From positions 62,001 through 126,000 of IMG/VR virus record IMGVR_UViG_3300049793_000366: 64,000 nt of DNA; one strand, 5' to 3'. Both the position numbers and the translations under genes were made by a program. Shown here one piece after another: positions 5,641 through 62,609 of the stretch (the first letter of the stretch is position 1; the number at the start of each line of letters is the position of its first letter). The notes under the pieces were generated by a model. It was not told the DNA's origin. It worked only from the letters and a program-made list of their open reading frames with translations, and did not search any database.

Positions 5641-7392
5641 TTATTGCTTGTTTTTACTGATATTATCCTTTAATAGTTTAATAATTTTTTGTGACCTAAT
5701 AGCTTCTTCGCCAGTAGAATCCTCAAGGGCAATCTCAGCCCATTTTATAGCTTGAACATATCCTCTATCAGCTCCATTTTCAATTAGCCATTGAACTAAA
5801 TCAAGGAATCCATTTTCAGCCGCAAATTTTAGTGGCATACCTTCTTTAGAGTTGATGTCAACACCTTTCTCTACTAAATATTTAATAAGTGGTAAGTTAC
5901 CTGTTCTACAAGCCGCTCTAATAGCATAAGAATCTTCGAAGTTAGGGTCAACACCATATTCTTCTACAATATACTTAACAGCATCGAAGTCACCTGATAA
6001 TGATTTAAATGCTTCCTTATTCATATTAGCACCATGTTTAAGTAATAACTTTAACATATCAAATGTTTTAACCAATGATACTGCTGTTTTATTTTTCTCA
6101 TAAGGGATATCCGGATTAGCACCATTATCCAATAAGAATTCAGCAACTTCTAAATTATTCGATTTAACAGCATTTCTAAGTGGTTTACCAGCTTCGATGT
6201 TAATATTAGCACCTTCCGCTAAACACTCTTTAATTCTATCAAGTGATGGAAGCTTTTCAGCTTTTAATTCTCTTGATGCTCTGTTATATTTTTCTTTTTG
6301 GTCTTTTTCTTCATTCGTCATTGCTCTTACAGCCGCATTCTCTTCTTCATCTAATCTTTTTCTAACTTGTCCTTCATCGATATAAGAGTCATTCTTAGTA
6401 TGTGCAGTGTCAAAAGTACCTTTCATATTAACTGTACAACCAATGATAGACTTTAAATCTGTTGGTGGTAAAGCATAGTCAAAAATAGCATACTGCTTTG
6501 TAAATTTATTCTCGTTACCAACGTATTGGTCCCAATGTCCTTGCGTTCTTGCGATACACCAGTTTGTTTGAGCGCATAATAATCGACAAGCATCAAATGA
6601 TTTTAATTCAACGATAACTCGTTCTTTTTCTTCATTCATAAATGCGATTGTAGCACCCCACTTTTCACCATATTTAGCATTAACATCTTCAACCTTCTTC
6701 AATAGTTCAGTCAAACCATCATTAGTACAAGCCTTAACGTATTGCTCCATCCTTTTAGTAGCCTCATCTGCTGTCTTAATAGCTGAAATCTTTTTGAAGA
6801 ATTCTTTTCTAAGAATTGGATCCAAATCGAATAGACCAATAGCAGCACCATCAAATCTTTCTTTTAATTTACCAGTGATACGCAAAACGTCATGTTTTAA
6901 CTCAGATGGTAACTCATCAATAATCTTTTTTACCTTACGGTAGTTTTTAATACGTTCGATATCATCGACTAAATCTTCATAAGCTGTTCTATCTTCAAGA
7001 CCATATCTCTTTTCAGATTCTAAATATTTATCAACTTGTTTAGGAAGCTTGTTTAAGCTATCTCGATTTTCAAGTAATGTATTATACAATGCTGTTAAAT
7101 CATCCATTGATACTTTATCTCTAAAAAAGAATCTTGTGAATACCTCAGTATAACCTGGGTTTCTTTCAACAAGTTTTTTAATTTTTAAGAAGTCAGGATC
7201 ATTTTCAGCCTTTCTAATTTCGTCTGGTGTTAATTTAGCTTGAACTGGTGCTTCTCCCTCTTTAGGTTCAACAGGAGTTTCACCCTCTGTTTTAGAAGCT
7301 AAATATGTATCACGCATGAATTTTTTAGCATTCTGTACGTTTTCATTGACAGTTTCTTTGTTTATAAAGTCGTTGTATTTACGCAAATTCAT
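5641..7392 (-). CDS. Ankyrin-repeat protein with N-terminal domain and capsid-targeting-like leader
   Basis: C-terminal ankyrin-like repeats (PLRNAVKSNNLEVAEFLLDNGANPD, AIRAACRTGNLPLIKYLVEKGVDIN, PLKFAAENGFLDLVQWLIENGAD); N-terminus MNLRKYNDFINKETVNE; central TNWCIA..W..Y motif. Confidence 0.85.
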   Translation of the reverse strand: MNLRKYNDFINKETVNENVQNAKKFMRDTYLASKTEGETPVEPKEGEAPVQAKLTPDEIRKAENDPDFLKIKKLVERNPGYTEVFTRFFFRDKVSMDDLTALYNTLLENRDSLNKLPKQVDKYLESEKRYGLEDRTAYEDLVDDIERIKNYRKVKKIIDELPSELKHDVLRITGKLKERFDGAAIGLFDLDPILRKEFFKKISAIKTADEATKRMEQYVKACTNDGLTELLKKVEDVNAKYGEKWGATIAFMNEEKERVIVELKSFDACRLLCAQTNWCIARTQGHWDQYVGNENKFTKQYAIFDYALPPTDLKSIIGCTVNMKGTFDTAHTKNDSYIDEGQVRKRLDEEENAAVRAMTNEEKDQKEKYNRASRELKAEKLPSLDRIKECLAEGANINIEAGKPLRNAVKSNNLEVAEFLLDNGANPDIPYEKNKTAVSLVKTFDMLKLLLKHGANMNKEAFKSLSGDFDAVKYIVEEYGVDPNFEDSYAIRAACRTGNLPLIKYLVEKGVDINSKEGMPLKFAAENGFLDLVQWLIENGADRGYVQAIKWAEIALEDSTGEEAIRSQKIIKLLKDNISKNKQ

Positions 7393-9116: not shown

Positions 9117-10946
9117 TTGACCAGATATATGGAATTAGAAGCTTTAAGAAAAATTATAAAAGAAGCAAATGCCGCTTATAGAAAAGGTAACGCTATCATT
9201 TCGGACGAAGAGTATGATAACTACGTTGAAATGCTTGAAGAACTTTCACCAAATGATGATTTGTTAAATCAAATCGGATTTGAAATAGAGGATGATTCGA
9301 GAAAAGAACGTTTACCTATGCAAATGCGTTCGATGAATAAAGTTAAAACCTATGCTGAATTACACAGATGGTTGGAACTGAAGGGTATACCAAAAACTAC
9401 TGAGTTAGTAATTACACCAAAATATGATGGTATCTCATTTTGCGTAGAAGAAGATGTTAAAAAAGCATGGACAAGAGGTGATGGTGTGTTTGGTCAACGT
9501 TCTGATGAACATTACAAAACCATTGGTAACTCAAGTGATACACTTAAGCATTTAACATTTGGTGAGGTAATGATGCCTCGTGGTGTATTCGCGCAAAAAT
9601 ACAGCACTGATTTCAAGAATCCTCGAAATATGGTAGCTGGTCAAATCAATAATAAAGAGCCACAAAAAACATTAGCTGATTTAGTTTACATAAGATATGG
9701 TATTGGAAATAGTGAGTTTCCGACCAAATCAGCACAATTGGAATTCTTAAACAAAAACCAGGGCATCACTGTACCATTTTTCATTACAACTATCGATAAA
9801 CTATCAGAAGATAGTCTATTAGACCTATTCAATAAATTAAACACTGAGTTTGAGCTTGATGGTTTAATCATTGAAGTAAATGATGAATCACTGAGAACTA
9901 AACTTGGTCGCGAAACATCTACTGGAAATCCTTGTTTTGCTCGTGCTTATAAAGGTGCGTTTGAACAAGTAGAAGAAACAGAGGTTATTGGTATTTCTTG
10001 GAATATTTCTAAGCAAGGGTTATTGAAACCAATTCTTCACATCAAACCTATTCAGTTAGATGGTGTAACTGTGTCGAATGTTACCGGGAACAATGCTAAG
10101 TTTGTTAAAGACAATGGTATTGGTATTGGCTCTATGGTTAAAGTTAAGCGTTCTGGTATGGTTATCCCTTTAATCGTAGCTGTAACAAAAACAGTTGAGT
10201 TTCAAACACCAACTATCGAAGGTGTTGAAGTAGTGTGGAATGAAGCCGGTATTGAATTAATGACATTAACTGAAACTGATGAACAACGATTCAAACAGCT
10301 TGTTTCCTTCTTTGAAATTTTAGAAGTTGAGAACGTATCAGAAGGTATCATTAAGCAACTTTGGGAAGCAGGCTACACAAATGTAGCTGATATACTTAAA
10401 CTACAAGCATCGCAACTAAATACCTTAGAAGGTTTTGGTAAAAGAAAAGCTGAGATAGTTTACAACGCTATTCACGATAAAATGAAGAATGTTGAATTGT
10501 CTAAGTTACAACACGCTACTGGATTCTTTAAAGGATTGGGTTCTAAGAAATTAGCTCTACTTGAGCATTTCGAATCAAAACCATCAGTAAATGATATCGT
10601 TTCAATTGAAGGTTTCGCTGAGACATCAGCATTGTCTTACTTAGAGGGATTGGATAAATTTCATGAGTTTGTGAAAGACTTACCTATAACATTGAAGAAG
10701 ACTACCAAAGTAGAATCATTATCAAGTGAGCTATCTGGTCAGCAGTTTGTATTCACTGGTGTAAGAAGAGCAGACTTAGAAGTTGTAATCGCTGAAAAGG
10801 GTGGTGTTGTTGGTTCTGGTGTATCTAAAAGAACTACATACTTAGTAATGAAAGAAGTTGGCTCTGGTTCATCTAAAGAACAGAAAGCTCTTGAATTGGG
10901 TGTTAAAGTTATCACCGTTCAACAGCTTGAGTCGATGCTATCGTAA
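9117..10946 (+). CDS. ligA: NAD-dependent DNA ligase
   Basis: ISDEEYD domain Ia, KYDG adenylation motif, TRGDG, DGLII, OB fold, HhH (EGFGKRKA) and C-terminal BRCT (FVFTG...SKRTTYLV). Start may be the ATG at 9129. Confidence 0.95.
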   Translation: MTRYMELEALRKIIKEANAAYRKGNAIISDEEYDNYVEMLEELSPNDDLLNQIGFEIEDDSRKERLPMQMRSMNKVKTYAELHRWLELKGIPKTTELVITPKYDGISFCVEEDVKKAWTRGDGVFGQRSDEHYKTIGNSSDTLKHLTFGEVMMPRGVFAQKYSTDFKNPRNMVAGQINNKEPQKTLADLVYIRYGIGNSEFPTKSAQLEFLNKNQGITVPFFITTIDKLSEDSLLDLFNKLNTEFELDGLIIEVNDESLRTKLGRETSTGNPCFARAYKGAFEQVEETEVIGISWNISKQGLLKPILHIKPIQLDGVTVSNVTGNNAKFVKDNGIGIGSMVKVKRSGMVIPLIVAVTKTVEFQTPTIEGVEVVWNEAGIELMTLTETDEQRFKQLVSFFEILEVENVSEGIIKQLWEAGYTNVADILKLQASQLNTLEGFGKRKAEIVYNAIHDKMKNVELSKLQHATGFFKGLGSKKLALLEHFESKPSVNDIVSIEGFAETSALSYLEGLDKFHEFVKDLPITLKKTTKVESLSSELSGQQFVFTGVRRADLEVVIAEKGGVVGSGVSKRTTYLVMKEVGSGSSKEQKALELGVKVITVQQLESMLS

Positions 10947-10966
10947 TAACAACAAATTTTTATCTT

Positions 10967-11236
10967 ATGGAAAAGAACTGTTCTATTTGTGGGAATCCTA
11001 TCCCAGAAGGAAGGCTTAAGGCTATGCCCAATGCTAAAACTTGTGTTAAATGTTCTGATACTGATAAAGTATATGGACATAATATGATTACTGGTAAAAA
11101 TACCTACTCAGAGCTTCAAATTGTTGATGCTGAAACTTCTCGTAGATTGAGAGCATTAGAGAACAGGGCTGGGTATGGTGTATCGAATGGTGTTAAATTT
11201 GATTCGGATAAAACAAAAGAATCAGGCGAAGAGTAG
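10967..11236 (+). CDS. TraR/DksA-type C4 zinc-finger protein
   Basis: CSICGNPIPEGRLKAMPNAKTCVKC matches the DksA/TraR zinc-finger pattern. Confidence 0.8.
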   Translation: MEKNCSICGNPIPEGRLKAMPNAKTCVKCSDTDKVYGHNMITGKNTYSELQIVDAETSRRLRALENRAGYGVSNGVKFDSDKTKESGEE

Positions 11237-11269
11237 TAAACTTTTCGTGTTTTTGAATAATAAAACAGA

Positions 11270-12256
11270 ATGAAAGAATTTATTGAGAAAATAAATGAGC
11301 AAATTGTAGAAGCAGTTGATATTGCGAATACTTCTAATTTTAAGAAATATTCAAAGATATCAGAGGTTTTGATTTGTGGTGTGGGTGGCTCTGGTATCTC
11401 AGGTACTATCGTAGCAAATATATTCAAAGACGAATGTAAAGTTCCTATATTCGTGAATAAGTCGTATAATATACCAAAATGGGTCAATAAGAACACGTTG
11501 ACAATTATATCATCATATTCAGGTACAACAGAAGAAACGGTTTCTTGTCTTAACCAAGCACTAAAAGCTAATACACAGATATTGTGCATAGCTACTGGTG
11601 GAACTGTTATAGAAGAAGCTAAGGATAAGAACCTCGACTATATTATTATACCATCTGGTTATCAACCAAGAGCGGCTTTAATTTATTCACTGATTCAAAT
11701 AATTAACGTATTGAGTAGTCAGGGATTTATTTCTGATAAAACAAACGAAATTAAAAACGCATCTGAGATACTTAAGTCAGAATCATGTGATGCTGTTGAA
11801 TACGCCAGACATATCGCTAAATTTATGGTGGGTTCAATTCCTATTATATACTCCGATGATATCTACGAAGGTATTGCAATAAGATTCAGGCAACAGTTGA
11901 ATGAGAATGCTAAGATGATTGCTTTCTCTTCAACATTACCAGAAATGAACCATAACGAATTAGTGGCTTTATTTGGACAATCATCCAATAGTAAAAACTA
12001 TCGTTGTATCTTCATAAATACTGGTCACGACCATGTAGAAATGCGTAAGAGATACGACTTCTTAAAGATAACTCTTGATAAGAGAGGTATACAGTGGTTG
12101 GATATCATCACACAAGGAAATACACCTCTCGAAAAAGCTTTATATACAATCCATTTAGCTGATTGGATATCTTATTACCTTTCTATTGAGAACGATGTAG
12201 ATCCGTTTGATGTTGGTATCATTGGTGCCTTAAAAGACTTCATTAAGCGCGATTAA
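11270..12256 (+). CDS. Bifunctional phosphoglucose/phosphomannose isomerase (double SIS domain)
   Basis: ICGVGGSGISG, SYSGTTEET, GYQPRAA, RFRQQLNENAK and LPEMNHNE motifs of the PGI/PMI family. Confidence 0.88.
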   Translation: MKEFIEKINEQIVEAVDIANTSNFKKYSKISEVLICGVGGSGISGTIVANIFKDECKVPIFVNKSYNIPKWVNKNTLTIISSYSGTTEETVSCLNQALKANTQILCIATGGTVIEEAKDKNLDYIIIPSGYQPRAALIYSLIQIINVLSSQGFISDKTNEIKNASEILKSESCDAVEYARHIAKFMVGSIPIIYSDDIYEGIAIRFRQQLNENAKMIAFSSTLPEMNHNELVALFGQSSNSKNYRCIFINTGHDHVEMRKRYDFLKITLDKRGIQWLDIITQGNTPLEKALYTIHLADWISYYLSIENDVDPFDVGIIGALKDFIKRD

Positions 12257-14424
12257 AGTCTCTTTCCAAAAATATCGATATTATTACCTCTCTGTTGATT
12301 CTTATATTGGTTCATAAACTTTCTGTTTCTATTAACAGATAACATAGCACCATAATCAGTTCCTTCGCTATAATCAACATTCTTTAATTTCTCATTGATG
12401 AATGTTGCTAATTCTTTTGGTATACCTCTGGTAACCATCTGTTCACATAAATCTTTGAAGAATATTTTCTTGAATACTGTCGCGGCACTAACTAATGTCA
12501 TAACAGTATCATCATTACCAGTATCAGCTTGATATCTAACGTTACCAGCAGTTGTTATAGTCTTAATAAAGGTCGTAATCTCATGTATATTCTCAGCATT
12601 ATTAACCTGTATATCACCTCTTTGCATAGCATCTTGGTAATCTTTAATTAATAGATTTTTATTATCATTGATTTTAAGACCTATCTTCTCTTCAGTAGCA
12701 TCCGCGCGATGTTTATATCTAACGAATACACCAGAGCCATAATCATTATTACCATCAAATACCTGTGGCATATGTGCTAATAATTCAGAGCCATATGTAT
12801 TTAATTCTAATACAATCTTAACCTTGTCACCATTGAAATATTCAAAGGCAATTAAATAAAGTAACTCAGCTAATTGCTTAACTGATACAATATTGGATCT
12901 AAATAATCCAATTTGAGTCAATGTAAAGAAATCAGCAGTATTATTATACGTGTGATGTTGTAACTCTATTTTCTCCTTAGACTTAGGCATGAGTCGGAAT
13001 ATATTTAAAATAGAGTAATCCTGACCCAATCCCTCTGCTATATCTACCGATATAACAACATCATATGTTTTCCTTGCAATTGGCGCGAATAGATTAGGGT
13101 CGTCAATCCATTTCAAGTTTTGATATGACCATCTTAATTTTCTATCAAACTCATGTATTTGTTCAAATACATACTCTTTTTTACTCTTAAGTAACTCATC
13201 TATTATTTTCTCATCAAATAATGATTTAGATGCGTTTACGAAACGTAAGTCGTACTCTTGATTGAAAGCCTCTTCACCACCAATATCTTTGATGGCTTCT
13301 TCTTTCCATGATGTAACCTCACATAATTCAACGATAGGTACTTCGAGACCTAATCTATTAATAAACGTAATAGCTCTAACATCATCAGTAGAACATCTAT
13401 CACTGTTTTGTATGTGTATAACATCTTTATTTGTATTGTAGTCAAACTGTTCTGTTATTTGGTCAATTGCTAAACCACCCCAATCAAAGGTGTCTCGTAA
13501 TCTTGCTACGATATCATCCTTAGATATACCGTGTTCGTGTAATAGACCTTCATCAATACGTAGATATGTAACGAATCGATTTGGTACTTGCCACCAATAC
13601 ACACGCATGGCTTTATAGTTATTCTTAAGCTTATCACCTTCTGGTCTCTCAGCAGCTGCTAATAGCTTATAGAACATATTCATACCGTTAGGTGTTGATG
13701 TAATAATAATCTTAGAGTTACTAATCGCAGAAACCGTTGGGAATGCGGCAGTATAGTATGGTTCAATAATATTAGATGGAATGTGAGCAAACTCATCCAT
13801 GTATAAGAAGTCAATAGTAAAACCGATTGCTGGTGTCTTAGAACGAGCAGATGTTTTGATACGACATCCATTTTCGAAAATAAGTGACTTTTGATTCCAG
13901 TTCTTAACACCCTTTTGTAAAAAGAATGGCATCAATCTATAAATTGATTTAATCTTATCAACAATCTCTACTGCTGTATCACCTTTATTGGCGATAATCA
14001 TCACGTTTTTATCATTATTGAATAGTACGAAGTGTAGAATAGCAATCGCGGCTGATACAGTCTTACCAACCTGACGAGATGCCATTAAGATACTGAATCT
14101 ATTTTTTGTATATAAATCTAATATATCTTTTTGGTAATCACGTAGCTTCATTTGACCTACGGTACCATCCTCTCGTTTAATCTTACAGTATTTCTCAGAG
14201 AAGTAATGAATATCAAGTTTGCATTTAATGTATTCTTGGATTTCATCCTCTGTCATTGAATATACGCAACCCGCTCGTCTAACACCTATCTCACCACTGA
14301 ACCATGGGTTCATGAATCTCTTTATAGCATAACCGTCATTAATCTTGGCTGTTACGTCTACTACATTCTCGGCATTAAATATAAATTGTTTATCTGGGGT
14401 TGGCTTTTTTGTTTTAGTAGCCAT
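12253..14424 (-). CDS. gp17: Terminase large subunit
   Basis: LRDYQ, ASRQVGKT Walker A, LYMDEFAH Walker B, IITSTPNG, FNQEY, nuclease motifs SVDIAEG and NDDTVM. Confidence 0.95.
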   Translation of the reverse strand: MATKTKKPTPDKQFIFNAENVVDVTAKINDGYAIKRFMNPWFSGEIGVRRAGCVYSMTEDEIQEYIKCKLDIHYFSEKYCKIKREDGTVGQMKLRDYQKDILDLYTKNRFSILMASRQVGKTVSAAIAILHFVLFNNDKNVMIIANKGDTAVEIVDKIKSIYRLMPFFLQKGVKNWNQKSLIFENGCRIKTSARSKTPAIGFTIDFLYMDEFAHIPSNIIEPYYTAAFPTVSAISNSKIIITSTPNGMNMFYKLLAAAERPEGDKLKNNYKAMRVYWWQVPNRFVTYLRIDEGLLHEHGISKDDIVARLRDTFDWGGLAIDQITEQFDYNTNKDVIHIQNSDRCSTDDVRAITFINRLGLEVPIVELCEVTSWKEEAIKDIGGEEAFNQEYDLRFVNASKSLFDEKIIDELLKSKKEYVFEQIHEFDRKLRWSYQNLKWIDDPNLFAPIARKTYDVVISVDIAEGLGQDYSILNIFRLMPKSKEKIELQHHTYNNTADFFTLTQIGLFRSNIVSVKQLAELLYLIAFEYFNGDKVKIVLELNTYGSELLAHMPQVFDGNNDYGSGVFVRYKHRADATEEKIGLKINDNKNLLIKDYQDAMQRGDIQVNNAENIHEITTFIKTITTAGNVRYQADTGNDDTVMTLVSAATVFKKIFFKDLCEQMVTRGIPKELATFINEKLKNVDYSEGTDYGAMLSVNRNRKFMNQYKNQQRGNNIDIFGKRL

Positions 14425-56223: not shown

Positions 56224-57441
56224 ATGACCAAAATTCAAAAGTTTTTTCAGTTTAATGAAAGTGCGCTAGGCTCTACTTTTTGGAATTTAATTCCAGAGTC
56301 TATTAAGACTATTCATGCCGTTTTTCAAGCAAGTGGTTATAAGCTATTCTTGGTCGGCGGTGCTGTGCGAGATTTTATTCAAGATGATATTCCAAAAGAT
56401 TATGACTTAGCTACTGATGCTCACCCGAAAGAGGTCATGAGCCTATTGGATGGTTATGAACTTAACTTACAAGGTAAAGCATTTGGTGTGGTTGTGGTAT
56501 ATACCGAAGACCAACCTCTTGGTATGGAGATAGCTACATTCAGAAAGGATGTTTCTAAAGGTAGAAATCCTTTAGTTGAGCTTATTGGTGTTACAATAGA
56601 AGATGATGTTAGAAGACGTGATATCACATACAATGCGTTATTCTTCGATTTGGATAAAAAGGAGATTGTAGATTTAGTTGGTGGCGTTGAAGATTTGAAG
56701 AACAAAATCACAAGAATGGTTGGTGATGCGATTGAGCGATTAGATGAAGATTCATTGAGAATTCTTAGAGCGTTCAGATTCGCCGCGAGATATAACAGTG
56801 AACTTGATGCTGATTTAGTTTCAGCATTGAGAAGAAGAAACTGGTTGAAAAATATTAACCACGAGACTGGTAAGCTTGAAAGAATCTCACAAGAGAGAAT
56901 TTGGCAAGATGAAATTGTTAAAGCATGGAAACAAGCTAAGAACAACTATACCAAGTATTTAAAATTCTTCACTGAGTTTGATATGTGGCCAGAAGTATTT
57001 CCGGGTGCTGTAATAAACTCTGATATCGTTAAGTGTGAACACTTCGAGGTTTACATGGCTAACCTTTTCAGAAATATGGATGTGGATGTTGCTCACCCTC
57101 AGAAGTCAGAAGCAGTATTGGTAGCTAATTACAAAATTGATGGTAATACAGCCGCAGTGATTGTTTTCTTAGTTAGTTTGTTACAGTTAACACCACAGAA
57201 TGCTCTTAGATTGTATAGAACTAAGACAAGATGCGTTTCTATGGGCTTTGAAGATATAGACCCAATGATAATCGATTGGTTCAATGTTAACTCAATAACC
57301 GATTCGACACATTCTAAATTCATCAGTTACAGACCTACTGTTGATGTTGAGTTTTTAAAATCTCAGGGTTTTAAAGATAAAGCTCTTGGTGATGAAATTC
57401 AGCGATTAGAGGTGATAGAATTCACTAAGTTAATAAAGTAA
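56224..57441 (+). CDS. cca: Class II tRNA nucleotidyltransferase (CCA-adding / poly(A) polymerase family) without HD domain
   Basis: LVGGAVRD, PKDYDLAT, EIATFR, RRDITYNAL, GGVEDL, EDSLRILRAFRFAAR and ISQERI; leader MTKIQKFFQFNES. Confidence 0.9.
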   Translation: MTKIQKFFQFNESALGSTFWNLIPESIKTIHAVFQASGYKLFLVGGAVRDFIQDDIPKDYDLATDAHPKEVMSLLDGYELNLQGKAFGVVVVYTEDQPLGMEIATFRKDVSKGRNPLVELIGVTIEDDVRRRDITYNALFFDLDKKEIVDLVGGVEDLKNKITRMVGDAIERLDEDSLRILRAFRFAARYNSELDADLVSALRRRNWLKNINHETGKLERISQERIWQDEIVKAWKQAKNNYTKYLKFFTEFDMWPEVFPGAVINSDIVKCEHFEVYMANLFRNMDVDVAHPQKSEAVLVANYKIDGNTAAVIVFLVSLLQLTPQNALRLYRTKTRCVSMGFEDIDPMIIDWFNVNSITDSTHSKFISYRPTVDVEFLKSQGFKDKALGDEIQRLEVIEFTKLIK

Positions 57442-57466
57442 AATTAGAATTCAATATATAACGACA

Positions 57467-58210
57467 ATGGCAAGATTACAATACATAAAAGATGTTTTAG
57501 GAAATAACTATGTGGGTATAGATGTTTACGCAGAAGAGGTTGCTCCTTATTTACAAAAACTGAAAGATTACATAGATGATGATAAGCAATTTGAAATACT
57601 AACTGCTAATCAAAAGTTGCGTGACCACGATAAATGGCACATCACTGTAATTAATGTATTTGATTATAACGACTTAGCTAAGTCACTTGGAATGAAAAAC
57701 TTTCTTGAGAGGTTAGATAATATCTTCAAGATGGAAGTTAACGATATCGATTTTAAAGGTATCGGTAGAGCAGAAAGAAATGGTAATGAAGCTTACTTTG
57801 TTGTTTGTCAGTCTGACTTTTTGAATTCTATTCGAGATTCTTTCAAATTAAACCCAATTGACCTTCATTGTACACTTGGGTTTAATAGAAAGGATGTTCA
57901 TGGTGTGAGGAAGAATGAGATTTTGGAGAATAAACCAAAATTTTTAAAAACTATTTCCAATCTTTATCATAAAGATAAATCTCTATCATTTATAAACGAC
58001 ATTCAAAATTTAGGAATGAAGTTAGATAATATAGAGGTTTTATCCATTACTGATACAGTGTTAACTATTCGTTCAAACGATGTGTGTTATGGTATATCTT
58101 TAATAAACACTGGTGATGAAGACGTTCTACGTATTGTATCGCAGTACGCAGATAATGGGAGTAAATCAATCAATCAATATCAAATAGAGAAAATACTGGG
58201 TAAACTATGA
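57467..58210 (+). CDS. 2H phosphoesterase
   Basis: Two HxT motifs (WHITVI, LHCTLGF) about 75 aa apart; AATATATA at 57453-57460. Confidence 0.75.
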   Translation: MARLQYIKDVLGNNYVGIDVYAEEVAPYLQKLKDYIDDDKQFEILTANQKLRDHDKWHITVINVFDYNDLAKSLGMKNFLERLDNIFKMEVNDIDFKGIGRAERNGNEAYFVVCQSDFLNSIRDSFKLNPIDLHCTLGFNRKDVHGVRKNEILENKPKFLKTISNLYHKDKSLSFINDIQNLGMKLDNIEVLSITDTVLTIRSNDVCYGISLINTGDEDVLRIVSQYADNGSKSINQYQIEKILGKL

Positions 58211-58693: not shown

Positions 58694-59314
58694 ATGGCAG
58701 GTATCTTCGACAAAGCAAAAAAGAACGCAGTTGTTAAAACAGCAGCAAAAGACGAAAAAACTCGTGTAACTATCGATAACCCAGAGTTCTTCGATAAAAT
58801 TGCTACTTTACAAGTACTTAACGAAAACATGAAACGTGATAAAGCGAAAGCTGACATGATTTCTGATGAAGTTAAAGAAATGGGTATCGAGAAGTGGGCT
58901 GACCTTTATACCGAAAAAGGTAAAAATCCTGAAACCATCATGCTTGAAGCACAAAACGCTACTGGTGACACTGCTCAAGCAATGTTCATGGTTACAGACA
59001 AATACATCAAAATTGACGAAGCTCGTGCTGAACAGTTGAAAGAATCTTATGGTGATGATATCGTTACCGAAGAAACTACTTTCGCTTTCGATGCTAAGAT
59101 GCTTGAGAAATATGCTGATATCATCAGCGAATTAATTGAAAATAGCGACAAAATTAAAGATGCCGACAAAGGCCAGTTAATTGTTGCTACAACCTCTTAC
59201 AACGTAGCAAAAGGTACTATCGACAAGCTTGATAAGTACGGAGAAGTTGCTACAATGGTTCAAGAAGTGAAACCAGTTGTAATGATGAAAAATGTAGAGG
59301 TTATCAACGGGTAA
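58694..59314 (+). CDS. Hypothetical early protein
   Basis: 206-aa Lys/Ala/Asp-rich ORF with strongly biased, high-expression-like codon use. Confidence 0.7.
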   Translation: MAGIFDKAKKNAVVKTAAKDEKTRVTIDNPEFFDKIATLQVLNENMKRDKAKADMISDEVKEMGIEKWADLYTEKGKNPETIMLEAQNATGDTAQAMFMVTDKYIKIDEARAEQLKESYGDDIVTEETTFAFDAKMLEKYADIISELIENSDKIKDADKGQLIVATTSYNVAKGTIDKLDKYGEVATMVQEVKPVVMMKNVEVING

Positions 59315-59316
59315 CC

Positions 59317-59436
59317 TTTTAGGAGCGTCTCTTGTTGTCGAAGAGTGGTGAGAAATCATCACTCTTTGTCAGATGGTGACTAAATGATACAACCAAATAG
59401 GTCACGCTACTATTTAATATAGTAGTTCTCTTAGAA
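59317..59436 (+). ncRNA. Candidate four-way-junction RNA
   Basis: Closing stem TTTTAGGAG/CTCTTAGAA; arms CGTCT/AGATG ending in an 11-bp GAAA hairpin, GTGACT/GGTCAC and CTACTAT/ATAGTAG. Confidence 0.5.
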
Positions 59437-59445
59437 ATTAAAAAT

Positions 59446-59511
59446 GGGGATTTAGCTCAGTGTTTAGAGCGTCTGTAAAGAAGGTCGGTGGTTCGATTCC
59501 ATCAATCTCCA
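59446..59511 (+). tRNA. tRNA-Ala-like RNA with a truncated anticodon arm (no anticodon)
   Basis: Acceptor GGGGATT/AATCTCC (G3:U70) with A73; D-stem GCTC/GAGC; T-arm GGTGG-TTCGATT-CCATC; variable AGGTC; anticodon arm only TCT-GTAA-AGA. Confidence 0.75.
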
Positions 59512-59513
59512 CA

Positions 59514-59624
59514 AGTGTTGTAGGGCATATTAGGTCAGTTAAAGCACTGACATAGGGGTAGAATGACAGTACTTCGTTTTACCAAACAAAAACTACAAGT
59601 GTTTACCCGACACTTGGCAACACT
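59514..59624 (+). ncRNA. Candidate multi-stem RNA between the two tRNAs
   Basis: AGTGTTG/CAACACT closing stem; hairpins GTCAGT/ACTGAC, GGTAGAA/TTTTACC and CAAGTGT/ACACTTG. Confidence 0.5.
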
Positions 59625-59629
59625 GACCC

Positions 59630-59701
59630 GGTTTGGTAGCTCAATGGCAGAGCGGCGGATTCTAAACCCGAAGGTTGTGGGTTCGAACCCCATCCGAACC
59701 A
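59630..59701 (+). tRNA. Amber suppressor tRNA (anticodon CUA)
   Basis: Acceptor GGTTTGG/CCGAACC with A73; D-arm GCTC-AATGGCA-GAGC; anticodon loop TT-CTA-AA (59660-59666) on CGG/CCG; T-arm GTGGG-TTCGAAC-CCCAT; no encoded CCA. Confidence 0.78.
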
Positions 59702-59702
59702 C

Positions 59703-59757
59703 ACTGCTTAGTTACATAGTGTGTTACAGATTCTCCTTTAGCAAGAGGATCAGCAGT
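59703..59757 (+). ncRNA. Small candidate structured RNA after the suppressor tRNA
   Basis: ACTGCT/AGCAGT closing stem stacked on a GATTCTC/GAGGATC hairpin. Confidence 0.35.
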
Positions 59758-59759
59758 AA

Positions 59760-59789
59760 AACCCGTTCTTCGAGCGGGTTTTCTTTTTT
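59760..59789 (+). terminator. Intrinsic terminator ending the RNA array
   Basis: AACCCGTT-CTTCG-AGCGGGTT followed by TTCTTTTTT. Confidence 0.85.
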
Positions 59790-60492
59790 ACAATAAATTG
59801 ATTTTGGATATTGGTCTATCACCGCTCTTGAATACACCCATTCCTATAATTACGGAAATAGTATCATCTTTCTCTTCGGTTTTTATTGCGCGACTTATAA
59901 CTACGTCTAAATCATTCTTATTTATGATTAGAACAGACTTCTCAGTCCAAGTGGGTACTACATAGCATTTTCTATTATTAATGAAGCCAGCCTCAGAGAA
60001 ACCCATATTCTTACTAAATAGTAGACTATTCTGCTTTTTGTAAATATCATTGAATGCAGGCATACTGAATAAAACTATTGAGTCAGCCTTTAGACATGAT
60101 TCTATACTCGACATTACGTATTCCTTAGACTTAGTTTTCTTTGAGAAAAGTCTCTTGAAGAAATTCTTTGCCTTATAAAACTTGATGTATTCTATTACAT
60201 TAGCATTTGATGATAAATAATTTAGAATGTGACTATGAATGTGACTCTTAGCTAAATTAGCAGCTATTGGTGTTAAGTCAATATCATTTTTATTATGTTG
60301 GATATCAATATTATGTTCATCCAAAACACAGTCTATAAGTACCGTATCAGTTTCGATTAGGTCGCCTTTGTTGACGGTTGTTTGCTTTTGATACTTACCT
60401 TTATTTCTATCGATGTAGAAAATATTTACAATATCGCTAACGTTAGATGCATTCATAGCACCTGATAAAATCTCGTGTTTATCTATGTTCAT
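59788..60492 (-). CDS. Hypothetical protein
   Basis: 234-aa ORF converging on the terminator. Confidence 0.55.
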   Translation of the reverse strand: MNIDKHEILSGAMNASNVSDIVNIFYIDRNKGKYQKQTTVNKGDLIETDTVLIDCVLDEHNIDIQHNKNDIDLTPIAANLAKSHIHSHILNYLSSNANVIEYIKFYKAKNFFKRLFSKKTKSKEYVMSSIESCLKADSIVLFSMPAFNDIYKKQNSLLFSKNMGFSEAGFINNRKCYVVPTWTEKSVLIINKNDLDVVISRAIKTEEKDDTISVIIGMGVFKSGDRPISKINLL

Positions 60493-61640: not shown

Positions 61641-62609
61641 TTATACTTTCTTTTCAAAGATGTATAAGTCATAAATGTTATTACCCTTTATGCGCTTAAT
61701 CTTCTTTAGTACATCACCAGTTACAGAATCAAGTACTTTATATACACCCAATGTTGTACCGTTGCTTGTCAATACTTTTACAGTATTACCAGTTTGACCT
61801 AATGCTCCTAATATTGCGATGAATTTATTACCATAAATACTCTTTAAGAAAGATAATCTCATGTTAGCAACATCTTTAACTTGTGCTACATAAGCATTTT
61901 CAAATGGTTCATTTAAGTCTAATAAAGTATCAGTCTTAGTAACTTTAATAGTTGCGAACTTAGAACCTTTCTCAGACATAGTAACATCTTCCTTATTTTG
62001 GATTGTTTGTGTCTTAACAAGATTCTGTTGATTTCTTCTAATTTCATTAAAGTCAGCACGAGCGATGATACCACCTCTCATACCCTTATCATTCATATTA
62101 TATCCTTCTGGTGGTAAACGGTAGAAAGATCCGGTAAATGTCATTGATAATATACGGTCTGCTCTGAATAAACGCCAGATTTTCTTAATATGTGAGTTCT
62201 GTGATACAGACCAACCATTTAAGTGATAACCTCTAAGTAAAAGTTTACCCTTTGATGATTTACCATATACCATAGGATAGATAACCCTCTCGTGACCAGC
62301 AAAGTGCTTATCTTTTTCACCCTTATAGTTAATAAGGAAAATCATACCGTATTTAATAGCTCTGATTAATATATCAGGATTGAATTTAATTGGTTCGTTT
62401 ACTGGAATATCTTTAAAGATGGCTACATCATTTAATGAGAATCGAGGTACGAAAGATGTATCTTCAATTAAATCATTATAGTTTTCCCTTAATACAAACT
62501 CAAGTGGCTTTTTAACAGAATTATACACTGGTGGTTGCCAAGTATCTTCAAGCTTATTAAGAGCTTCGTTTGTTTTCTTTATAAAGGATTCTTTGTTATT
62601 ATCAACCAT
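61641..62609 (-). CDS. WYL-like domain protein
   Basis: INYKG...RVIYPMVYG...LLRGYHL.G.S...IWRLFRADRILSM; AATATATA at 62614-62621. Confidence 0.65.
   Translation of the reverse strand: MVDNNKESFIKKTNEALNKLEDTWQPPVYNSVKKPLEFVLRENYNDLIEDTSFVPRFSLNDVAIFKDIPVNEPIKFNPDILIRAIKYGMIFLINYKGEKDKHFAGHERVIYPMVYGKSSKGKLLLRGYHLNGWSVSQNSHIKKIWRLFRADRILSMTFTGSFYRLPPEGYNMNDKGMRGGIIARADFNEIRRNQQNLVKTQTIQNKEDVTMSEKGSKFATIKVTKTDTLLDLNEPFENAYVAQVKDVANMRLSFLKSIYGNKFIAILGALGQTGNTVKVLTSNGTTLGVYKVLDSVTGDVLKKIKRIKGNNIYDLYIFEKKV

Follow-up and report, generated by a model that had tools for sequence, protein, structure and literature searches.

A conserved anticodon-armless copy of tRNA-Ala in a giant phage

The current analysis identifies a conserved extra copy of an alanine tRNA in a giant phage, from which the anticodon loop has been excised and the remaining stump capped, such that the RNA cannot read codons. 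The element appears to belong to a large and apparently undescribed class of anticodon-arm-less tRNA-like genes encoded by phages and bacteria. It is located at positions 59446–59511 (+) of a 64,000-nucleotide stretch of DNA (hereafter the window; positions 62,001 to 126,000 of IMG/VR record IMGVR_UViG_3300049793_000366). Neither an assembly error nor a fresh pseudogene accounts for it, as it is identical in an independent assembly and is maintained in two syntenic relatives. The function of the element is inferred. Our tentative preference is for a processed, alanylatable, non-decoding top-half tRNA serving as an alanine carrier or AlaRS ligand, whereas the principal alternatives are an uncleavable tRNA decoy and an RNase P/Z processing signal.

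Structure, genomic setting and origin of the element

The 66-nt gene reads GGGGATT TA GCTC AGTGTTTA GAGC G TCT-GTAA-AGA AGGTC GGTGG TTCGATT CCATC AATCTCC A, with the acceptor 5' strand at 59446–59452, the D arm at 59455–59470, the mini hairpin TCT-GTAA-AGA at 59472–59481, the variable loop at 59482–59486, the T arm at 59487–59503, the acceptor 3' strand at 59504–59510 and A73 at 59511. The acceptor stem has 7/7 pairs, including G1:C72, G2:C71 and G3:U70, the D stem has 4/4 and the T stem 5/5, whereas the T loop is TTCGATT, the variable loop is 5 nt and the D loop lacks the G18G19 that contributes to the tRNA elbow. In place of a 5-bp anticodon stem with a 7-nt loop, there is only a 10-nt arm of 3 bp closed by GUAA. 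All of these features match the description in an earlier note made from the sequence alone, and that description proved correct in every detail. The Rfam tRNA model (RF00005) matches the element end to end at 53.3 bits (gathering score 29, E 3.8e-10) with all three remaining arms aligned, while its anticodon arm collapses from 11 central positions to 4. ARAGORN does not call it. The minimum-free-energy fold is precisely the same four-helix structure (-18.8 kcal/mol, z = -2.2), with 3 of 200 shuffled sequences folding as well. Position 73 is followed by CAA, so CCA is not encoded and would have to be added after transcription. An independent Logan assembly (SRR35783291, 185-kb contig) is 100% identical over 59315–59800.

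The element opens a small noncoding unit. It is followed by a 118-nt spacer (59512–59629, +), a tRNA with anticodon CUA (59630–59702, +; an amber suppressor labeled "tRNA-Pyl" by ARAGORN, 62.4 bits with Rfam) and an intrinsic-terminator-like hairpin (59758–59790, +) consisting of an 11-bp stem followed by CTTTTTT. The spacer matches no Rfam family, but is 89% and 77% identical to those of the two syntenic relatives and is predicted to form a 9-bp closing helix around three hairpins, with RNAalifold yielding 32 pairs, 3 of which exhibit compensatory changes. Upstream on the same strand are a DNA methyltransferase gene, a CCA-adding-type tRNA nucleotidyltransferase gene located 2 kb from the element (56224–57441, +; PF01743 at 8.8e-28, phrog_2244 at 7.8e-54; syntenic in relatives L292, L293 and L300), a 2H phosphoesterase gene of the "Swiss Army Knife" RNA-repair type (57467–58210, +; PF22547 at 1.2e-17) and two ORFs of unknown function. 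Among relatives of the CCA enzyme from viral and metagenome collections (38–57% identity), no tRNA hits were found nearby, although most of these were short contigs. A conserved 206-aa ORF (58694–59314, +) lies 132 nt upstream of the element and has more than 1384 homologues, many on 0.2–0.7 Mb contigs, but no Pfam, PHROG or PDB match. The remainder of the window encodes a T4-like core (portal, large terminase, gp23-type capsid, sheath, clamp loader and family B polymerase) as well as a HAD_SAK_1 RNA-repair domain protein. The window derives from a 508-kb IMG/VR contig that is part of a 711,805-bp JGI contig (Ga0497410_0000003), and its relatives in GenBank are uncultured phages of 0.63–0.74 Mb (LR745206.1, LR756501/2 and JAWVHH010000009.1), reportedly the huge-phage genomes of Al-Shayeb and colleagues.

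Using the 206-aa ORF as a synteny anchor, we retrieved relatives of this locus, two of which carry the element at the same position. L297, whose neighbor protein is 86% identical, has GGGGACT...AGTCTCC-A and the mini-arm TCTG-GTAA-CAGA, while L292 (82% identical; a 709-kb NCBI contig) has GGGGATT...AGTCCCC-A and the mini-arm TCT-GTAAT-GGA. The element is 86% and 89% identical to these orthologues, respectively, whereas fourfold-type third codon positions of the adjacent ORF, our proxy for neutral sites, are only 59% and 51% identical. Every stem substitution preserves pairing: 6:67 changes from U:A to C:G in L297 and to U:G in L292, and 3:70 changes from G:U to G:C in L292. The cap remains a 4–5-nt loop even though the stem length differs, and the unusual D loop without GG is shared by all three (AGTGTTTA, AGCCTGTTA and AGTGTCA). 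The suppressor tRNA is conserved in L297, L293–296 and L298–299, but in L292 it has lost its T arm while the armless element is intact. More distant relatives have only the suppressor tRNA, another tRNA, or nothing in that slot, the element being absent from L293–296, L298–300, LR745206.1 and LR756502.1. It therefore arose, or survives, within one sub-clade and is under purifying selection there. The earlier note had stipulated that a normal tRNA-Ala at this position in relatives would overturn its reading, but no such gene was found there.

The origin of the element is evident from a second piece of the same phage contig (L307), which holds a tRNA array including a canonical tRNA-Ala(UGC) at L307 8222–8296. 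The armless element aligns to this tRNA base for base, except that the 7-nt loop CTTGCAC is missing, one stem base has changed so that the stump closes as GUAA, and the T stem differs. Thus, it is a paralogue of the phage's own tRNA-Ala(UGC) rather than a relative of tmRNA.

Distribution and genomic associations of armless tRNA-like genes

To determine whether this design occurs elsewhere, we searched with a pattern demanding GGGG...U70-C71-C72, the D and T arms, and a D-to-T distance too short for an anticodon arm. This returned 16 viral contigs, one of which is this phage, and 29 bacterial genome loci, of which 28 were parsed. A blastn search of cultured-phage records further identified a 58-nt gene of the Polaribacter phage Danklef (NC_062745.1 43546–43603), which GenBank annotates as "tRNA-OTHER, Undet(NNN)". 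In contrast, megablast and blastn searches of the window locus against INPHARED returned no relative of the armless element; only the suppressor tRNA matched other phage tRNAs, and a second blastn returned normal tRNAs with a gap. Among 39 distinct alanine-type sequences, 38 have A73, which was not forced by the search pattern, and 12 encode CCA. The unforced stem pairs are 93–97% paired with many pair types, apart from a lineage-specific C6-C67 mismatch. The residual connector ranges from 8 to 19 nt (23 is normal) and is often a short stem capped by a stable tetraloop: GNRA in the window, in one other locus (L007) and in Bifidobacterium, CUUG or UUCG in Acidimicrobiia, and UCCG in Lacisediminihabitans. 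The same pattern with C70 in place of U70 found 7 viral loci as compared to 16, whereas at other G-initiated stem positions G:C outnumbers G:U roughly 7–15 to 1. Hence, G3:U70 is overrepresented, although ancestry from tRNA-Ala contributes to this, and both A73 and G3:U70 may partly reflect ancestry and the search pattern.

In Acidimicrobiia and Ilumatobacteraceae genomes, the element heads an operon. In 11 Acidimicrobiia loci, an AlaRS paralogue starts 32–180 nt downstream, and in 2 further loci an MprF-like aminoacyl-phosphatidylglycerol synthase (aaPGS) comes first, with the synthase appearing in five loci overall and being found in the Acidimicrobiia loci only; one example of such an operon is L141 1901–5864. 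The paralogue aligns end to end with the crystallized 441-residue N-terminal fragment of E. coli AlaRS (3hxu). Such N-terminal fragments suffice to charge tRNA-Ala and minihelices. AlaPGS accepts an Ala-minihelix as well as full tRNA (PMC6103681). This arrangement looks like a dedicated carrier, synthetase and transferase system, of which we found no description in the literature searched. Among phages, the picture is less uniform. The neighbor genes of the 16 viral alanine-type loci share no family, indicating there is no conserved protein partner. One 109-kb viral contig (L132/L306) has an armless alanine-type element directly before a roughly 300-aa mini-AlaRS, and the phage studied here encodes a 64%-identical mini-AlaRS, albeit about 300 kb away beside its tRNA array. 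However, this adjacency is unique to L306, as relatives (L310 and LR745206.1) have a normal tRNA-Ala near that gene instead, which excludes the notion that the mini-AlaRS is generally preceded by an armless element. The phage mini-AlaRS also lacks most of the tRNA-recognition domain. Read-through of a TAG between the class-II-like ORF and the mini-AlaRS could likewise be rejected, since the stop codon there is TAA. A tblastn search with the Acidimicrobiia AlaRS fragment and aaPGS found nothing in the window, nor was any Fem, aaPGS or L/F-transferase-type enzyme detected among the 54 window ORFs scanned, which comprise most, but not all, of the roughly 63 non-nested ORFs of at least 100 aa within this portion of the 0.7-Mb genome.

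When the alanine requirement was dropped, at least 120 viral loci were recovered. These held 99 distinct matches, 80 of which had at least 6 of 7 acceptor pairs and at least 4 of 5 T pairs, as compared to a chance expectation of about 1% for the acceptor alone. The acceptor stems of these 80 are very diverse and many do not start with G. As none of the ten eligible alanine-type loci fell within this sample, alanine-type copies are a small minority. In 22 of 116 loci, the element lies co-oriented just upstream of small terminase, large terminase and portal genes; where the small terminase gene is next, its start is 17–405 nt downstream, and in one locus (L121) it lies 14 nt from the element. 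Another group sits within a replication module. Lactococcus P335-type phages carry an unannotated armless copy in the attP region, between the lysin gene and the lysogeny module, whereas a hit in an Enterococcus Schiekvirus appears to be a permuted, YrlA-like arrangement and not of this type. Most of these RNAs could hardly be charged, because most synthetases need the anticodon. The architecture as such probably has a charge-independent use.

Possible functions of the armless tRNA-Ala

Several inferences can be made from these observations, although they differ considerably in strength. With high confidence, the element is a functional, non-decoding paralogue of the phage's tRNA-Ala(UGC) that is under purifying selection and constitutes the first gene of a small noncoding RNA unit. 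Its structure, conservation, paralogy, identity elements and genomic associations are directly demonstrated by the analysis, while its expression, processing, charging and the acceptor of any alanine are inferred. The mechanism we favor, though only tentatively, is that the transcript is cut by host RNase P and by RNase Z or exonucleases, which need only the acceptor/T minihelix, and receives CCA from the phage or host CCA-adding enzyme. AlaRS reads G3:U70 and A73 and ignores the anticodon, so the RNA would be alanylated, yet could not enter decoding. In this view, it acts as a top-half-only Ala-tRNA, presumably a dedicated alanine carrier or AlaRS ligand kept apart from translation, modeled on the bacterial armless tRNA-Ala-likes co-operonic with an AlaRS fragment and a lipid alanyl-transferase. 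This is supported by retention of the identity set in the window and in L297, as well as by the AlaRS and aaPGS associations of the alanine-type subclass. The strongest single argument against it is the G3:C70 pair of L292, which by established AlaRS rules should abolish charging, even though this is otherwise the best-conserved copy. A non-syntenic element, L316, which shares the GNRA cap and the D loop without GG, also has G3:C70. In addition, no aminoacyl-tRNA-dependent transferase was detected among the window ORFs scanned, adjacency to a mini-AlaRS occurs in only one phage, the elbow is atypical, and the far greater abundance of armless tRNA-likes with non-alanine acceptor stems in phages favors a charge-independent role for the architecture.

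The interpretation given in the earlier note is therefore partly supported. Its proposal of selection rather than decay holds, as do its statement that the RNA cannot decode, its reading of the AlaRS identity elements in this copy and its assignment of ORF 56224 as a CCA-adding enzyme. Its suggestion of a non-ribosomal alanine donor gains indirect support from the bacterial operons, but alanine identity is not invariant, and the proposed charging, EF-Tu or SmpB binding and decoy roles remain hypothetical. Its designation of the element as a tmRNA-TLD-like mimic is not supported.

An uncleavable tRNA top-half decoy or sponge is the next most viable scenario, albeit an unlikely one on present evidence. 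Such an RNA would retain the acceptor, T and D surfaces recognized by tRNA-targeting defense enzymes or sensors, including anticodon nucleases, acceptor-end or CCA-tail nucleases, and tRNA pyrophosphokinase or nucleotidyltransferase toxins, but would lack the anticodon loop they cut and would thereby titrate them, irrespective of charging. The RNA-repair neighborhood (the CCA-adding enzyme and 2H-SAK phosphoesterase upstream and the HAD_SAK_1 protein elsewhere in the window) suggests that the phage faces tRNA damage, and both the prevalence of the architecture in small phages with diverse acceptor stems and the tolerance of G3:C70 in L292 and L316 are consistent with this view. Moreover, tRNA-cleaving defenses and phage tRNA countermeasures are well documented, such as Cas12a3 cutting tRNA tails (PMC12851939) and Septu cutting tRNA-Tyr (PMC13096335). 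However, no defense system is known to be inhibited by such an RNA and none is described in the literature searched, a stoichiometric decoy would require very high expression, and neither the retention of the full AlaRS identity set (A73 in 38 of 39 and the G:U excess at 3:70) nor the Acidimicrobiia operons are explained.

It is also conceivable, but somewhat less likely still, that the tRNA-like top half recruits RNase P and RNase Z to cut the primary transcript, thus releasing or maturing the flanking RNAs, which would be the structured spacer and suppressor tRNA in this phage and the terminase mRNA in many small phages. Removal of the anticodon arm would then keep the by-product out of translation. 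The positions ahead of terminase genes, the freedom of acceptor sequences to vary while the D and T arms are conserved, and the location of the element at the head of a multi-RNA unit with a conserved structured spacer are all in accord with this scenario. On the other hand, the element is still conserved in L292 despite decay of the downstream suppressor tRNA, a normal tRNA would serve equally well as a processing signal, and the D loop here lacks the GG that helps form the elbow read by RNase P. Retention of AlaRS identity and the encoded CCA in 12 of 39 alanine-type copies would also be unexplained.

A decaying tRNA-Ala pseudogene is very unlikely: although the element is a duplicate with a simple loop deletion, lacks GG in the D loop, is absent from several relatives and has a counterpart in L306 that resembles a plain deletion without a neat hairpin, all 19 of its base pairs are intact, its orthologues exhibit only structure-preserving changes at 86–89% identity against 51–59% at neutral sites, the GUAA cap is kept although the stem length differs, and it outlives the neighboring suppressor tRNA in L292. 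A tmRNA-like ribosome-rescue mimic, in which the alanylated RNA, with SmpB standing in for the anticodon arm, would enter stalled ribosomes and modulate or block trans-translation, is the least likely of all, since the shared G3:U70, A73 and lack of an anticodon, together with the established dependence of trans-translation on SmpB, EF-Tu and alanylation, are outweighed by a contiguous cloverleaf derivative with a canonical 4-bp D stem and no mRNA-like domain or pseudoknots, the absence of a tmRNA call by ARAGORN in the window or of any Rfam family other than tRNA above its gathering score here, the clear origin from tRNA-Ala(UGC), and the G3:C70 of L292, which would prevent charging.

Relationship to known tRNA-derived RNAs and implications

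Several kinds of non-decoding tRNA-derived RNA have been described previously. The acceptor/T minihelix substrates of AlaRS and AlaPGS (PMC6103681; PMC11392972) similarly present G3:U70 with A73 on a 7-bp acceptor stem stacked on a T arm, but are laboratory constructs, whereas the element is a natural gene that also keeps the D arm and variable loop, and its charging is inferred from sequence alone. The non-proteinogenic tRNA-Gly isoacceptors of Staphylococcus, which are dedicated to peptidoglycan synthesis (PMC7826273), are extra tRNA copies diverted from the ribosome to a non-ribosomal aminoacyl-transfer pathway and provide the working model for the Acidimicrobiia operons and, by extension, for this element. 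However, they keep a normal anticodon arm and escape translation through weak EF-Tu binding, whereas here the anticodon is physically removed and no transferase partner is known in the phage. The tmRNA tRNA-like domain shares the alanine identity, T arm and lack of an anticodon, but has no true D stem, its ends flank a long mRNA-like and pseudoknot body, and it needs SmpB. A 2026 preprint reports mitochondrial tRNA-X1, X2 and X3 genes of Vischeria (eustigmatophyte algae), some of which lack the anticodon loop or arm (PMC13060386). These are also conserved tRNA-derived genes, of unknown function, in which only the anticodon arm varies or disappears and which are inferred to work outside decoding, but they are organellar, derived from tRNA-Lys, and have neither alanine identity nor a phage context. 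YrlA and other bacterial Y-RNA-like tRNA mimics (Rfam RF02553), also found in phages, combine a tRNA-like D/T/acceptor module with the lack of a decoding anticodon arm, yet YrlA is circularly permuted, with its acceptor closed by a loop, its ends forming the Ro-binding stem and its gene next to rsr. The topology of the present element is normal, the window scores only 15.5 bits against the YrlA gathering score of 69, at a different position, and no TROVE/Ro gene is among the neighbors scanned. Lastly, the tRNA-Other of Bacillus cereus (cited in PMC5389517) is a tRNA-like small RNA that is charged non-canonically and not used for normal decoding, but it keeps an anticodon arm, has lysine-related identity and belongs to a different lineage. 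In the literature searched, we found no report of anticodon-arm-less tRNA-like genes in phages or bacteria, whether as truncated or mini-tRNAs, tRNA mimics or decoys.

Reviews of tRNA treat the anticodon arm as its invariant part (PMC7609411), whereas the current results show a natural, selected design that removes exactly that arm and keeps everything else, and that recurs in many unrelated phages and bacteria. It is possible, though by no means assured, that such genes form a large class of functional non-decoding RNAs that standard tRNA finders miss or label "tRNA-OTHER/Undet". In that case, the alanine-type subclass would be charged by AlaRS or dedicated AlaRS fragments to serve as an orthogonal alanine carrier, feeding lipid alanylation in Acidimicrobiia and an unknown acceptor in phages, while the wider class would act as tRNA top-half mimics in phage-host conflict or in RNA processing. 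Regardless of which reading is correct, genome annotation pipelines are systematically missing these genes, and the existence of cultivable carriers, such as Polaribacter phage Danklef and the Lactococcus P335-type phages, renders the question directly testable. If these RNAs are charged, they are natural orthogonal aminoacyl carriers, which is useful for understanding tRNA-dependent lipid and cell-wall chemistry as well as for synthetic biology. If they are not charged, they are a new kind of tRNA mimic in the tRNA-centered arms race between phages and bacteria, or a phage form of tRNA punctuation.

RNA genes and RNA-repair-type genes of the window

An amber-suppressor-type tRNA (anticodon CUA) occupies window positions 59630-59702 and is conserved across this phage clade, as seen in the relatives L297 (1469-1540), L293 (5630-5700), and L298 (3372-3442), whereas it has decayed in the relative L292. 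In the window copy, the anticodon stem contains two non-standard pairs. The window itself shows no recoding: its 63 ORFs end in TAA 53 times, TAG 7 times, and TGA 3 times, and about 90% of the window is coding under the standard code. The 118-nt spacer (window 59512-59629) located between the two tRNA-type genes is as conserved as they are (89% and 77%) and is predicted to fold into a 9-bp closing helix around three hairpins, with 3 compensatory pairs. No Rfam family matches this spacer, which may be a further structured RNA. The window also holds an RNA-repair-type gene set comprising a CCA-adding enzyme and a 2H-SAK phosphoesterase (window 56224-58210) as well as a HAD_SAK_1 domain protein encoded by an ORF elsewhere in the window. 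The CCA-enzyme and 2H-SAK pair is syntenic in the relatives L292, L293, and L300.

Miniature synthetase-like genes and a GOLLD RNA in the same phage

In L307, a second piece of the same phage, a cluster of miniature synthetase-like genes lies beside a tRNA array (Glu, Tyr, Gly, Ile, Ala) at 9158-12572, corresponding to contig position about 422-425 kb. The cluster comprises a 266-aa class-II core (PF00587), a roughly 275-aa AlaRS-like core (PF01411), a LAGLIDADG endonuclease, and a 359-aa TyrRS/TrpRS-type enzyme. The AlaRS-like frame has no ATG, GTG, or TTG start. A conserved Shine-Dalgarno plus GTG mini-ORF (MDA...stop) sits in another frame just before it in four phages (L306, L307, L309, and L310), which suggests coupling or frameshifting. 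The same huge phage also encodes a GOLLD RNA (Rfam RF02032, 232 bits) at L307 19915-20329, which is immediately followed by a tRNA.

Aberrant tRNA-like genes in other phages and viral contigs

Among viral contigs (L162-L275), there is a large class of anticodon-arm-less tRNA-like genes with diverse, non-alanine acceptor stems, which amounts to at least 80 distinct well-formed copies. Examples can be found at L172 436-2763, L275 3515-7100, and, in a further viral contig, L121 7232-7294. In 22 loci, these genes lie co-oriented just upstream of small terminase, large terminase, and portal genes, while another group lies between an Enc34-type ssDNA-binding protein gene and a DNA polymerase A gene. 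Well-studied Lactococcus P335-type phages likewise carry an unannotated armless tRNA-like gene (GGTTCTT...AAGAACC-A, with a CCGTTCGG stump), as seen at 1493-1556 of L305, from Lactococcus phage D2950, and also in bIL309, TP712, P335, and bIL286. This gene lies between the lysin gene and the lysogeny module, which is the attP region. Furthermore, a 160-kb viral contig (L316) encodes an armless GGGG-type element at 6772-6836 with a GTA-GCAA-TAC cap, no GG in the D loop, and G3:C70, and it is followed at about 6900-7000 by another aberrant tRNA-like sequence that ARAGORN does not call.

Other departures from the canonical architecture were encountered as well. Several viral contigs (L004 4022-4100; L037, L039, L045, L074, L094, and L116; and the L012 family) carry tRNA-like genes whose anticodon arm is shortened by only 3 nt. 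Examples include a 4-bp stem with the 6-nt loop TTTCTA, which contains CTA, and the arm CCAC-ACTTCC-GTGG, each of which recurs in several of these contigs. In Enterococcus phage EFDG1 (L302 1495-1570) and other Schiekvirus genomes, a T arm plus acceptor 3' strand is followed after 6 nt by the complementary acceptor 5' strand and a D arm. This permuted tRNA-like arrangement is located about 300 nt upstream of a gene annotated as an "RNA-binding protein" and is probably a YrlA/Ro-type module.

An armless tRNA-Ala-like operon in Acidimicrobiia and Ilumatobacteraceae

Acidimicrobiia and Ilumatobacteraceae chromosomes carry an operon that includes an anticodon-arm-less tRNA-Ala-like gene with a CUUG- or UUCG-capped stump, often with encoded CCA, together with an AlaRS paralogue equal to the N-terminal aminoacylation fragment and an MprF-like aminoacyl-phosphatidylglycerol synthase. 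The operon was found in the bacterial genome loci L150 (5075-6525), L160 (5346-6779), L141 (1901-5864), and L154 (243-2907), and also in L133-L139, L145, L149, L156, and L157. We found no description of this operon. It looks like a dedicated, translation-insulated lipid-alanylation system.
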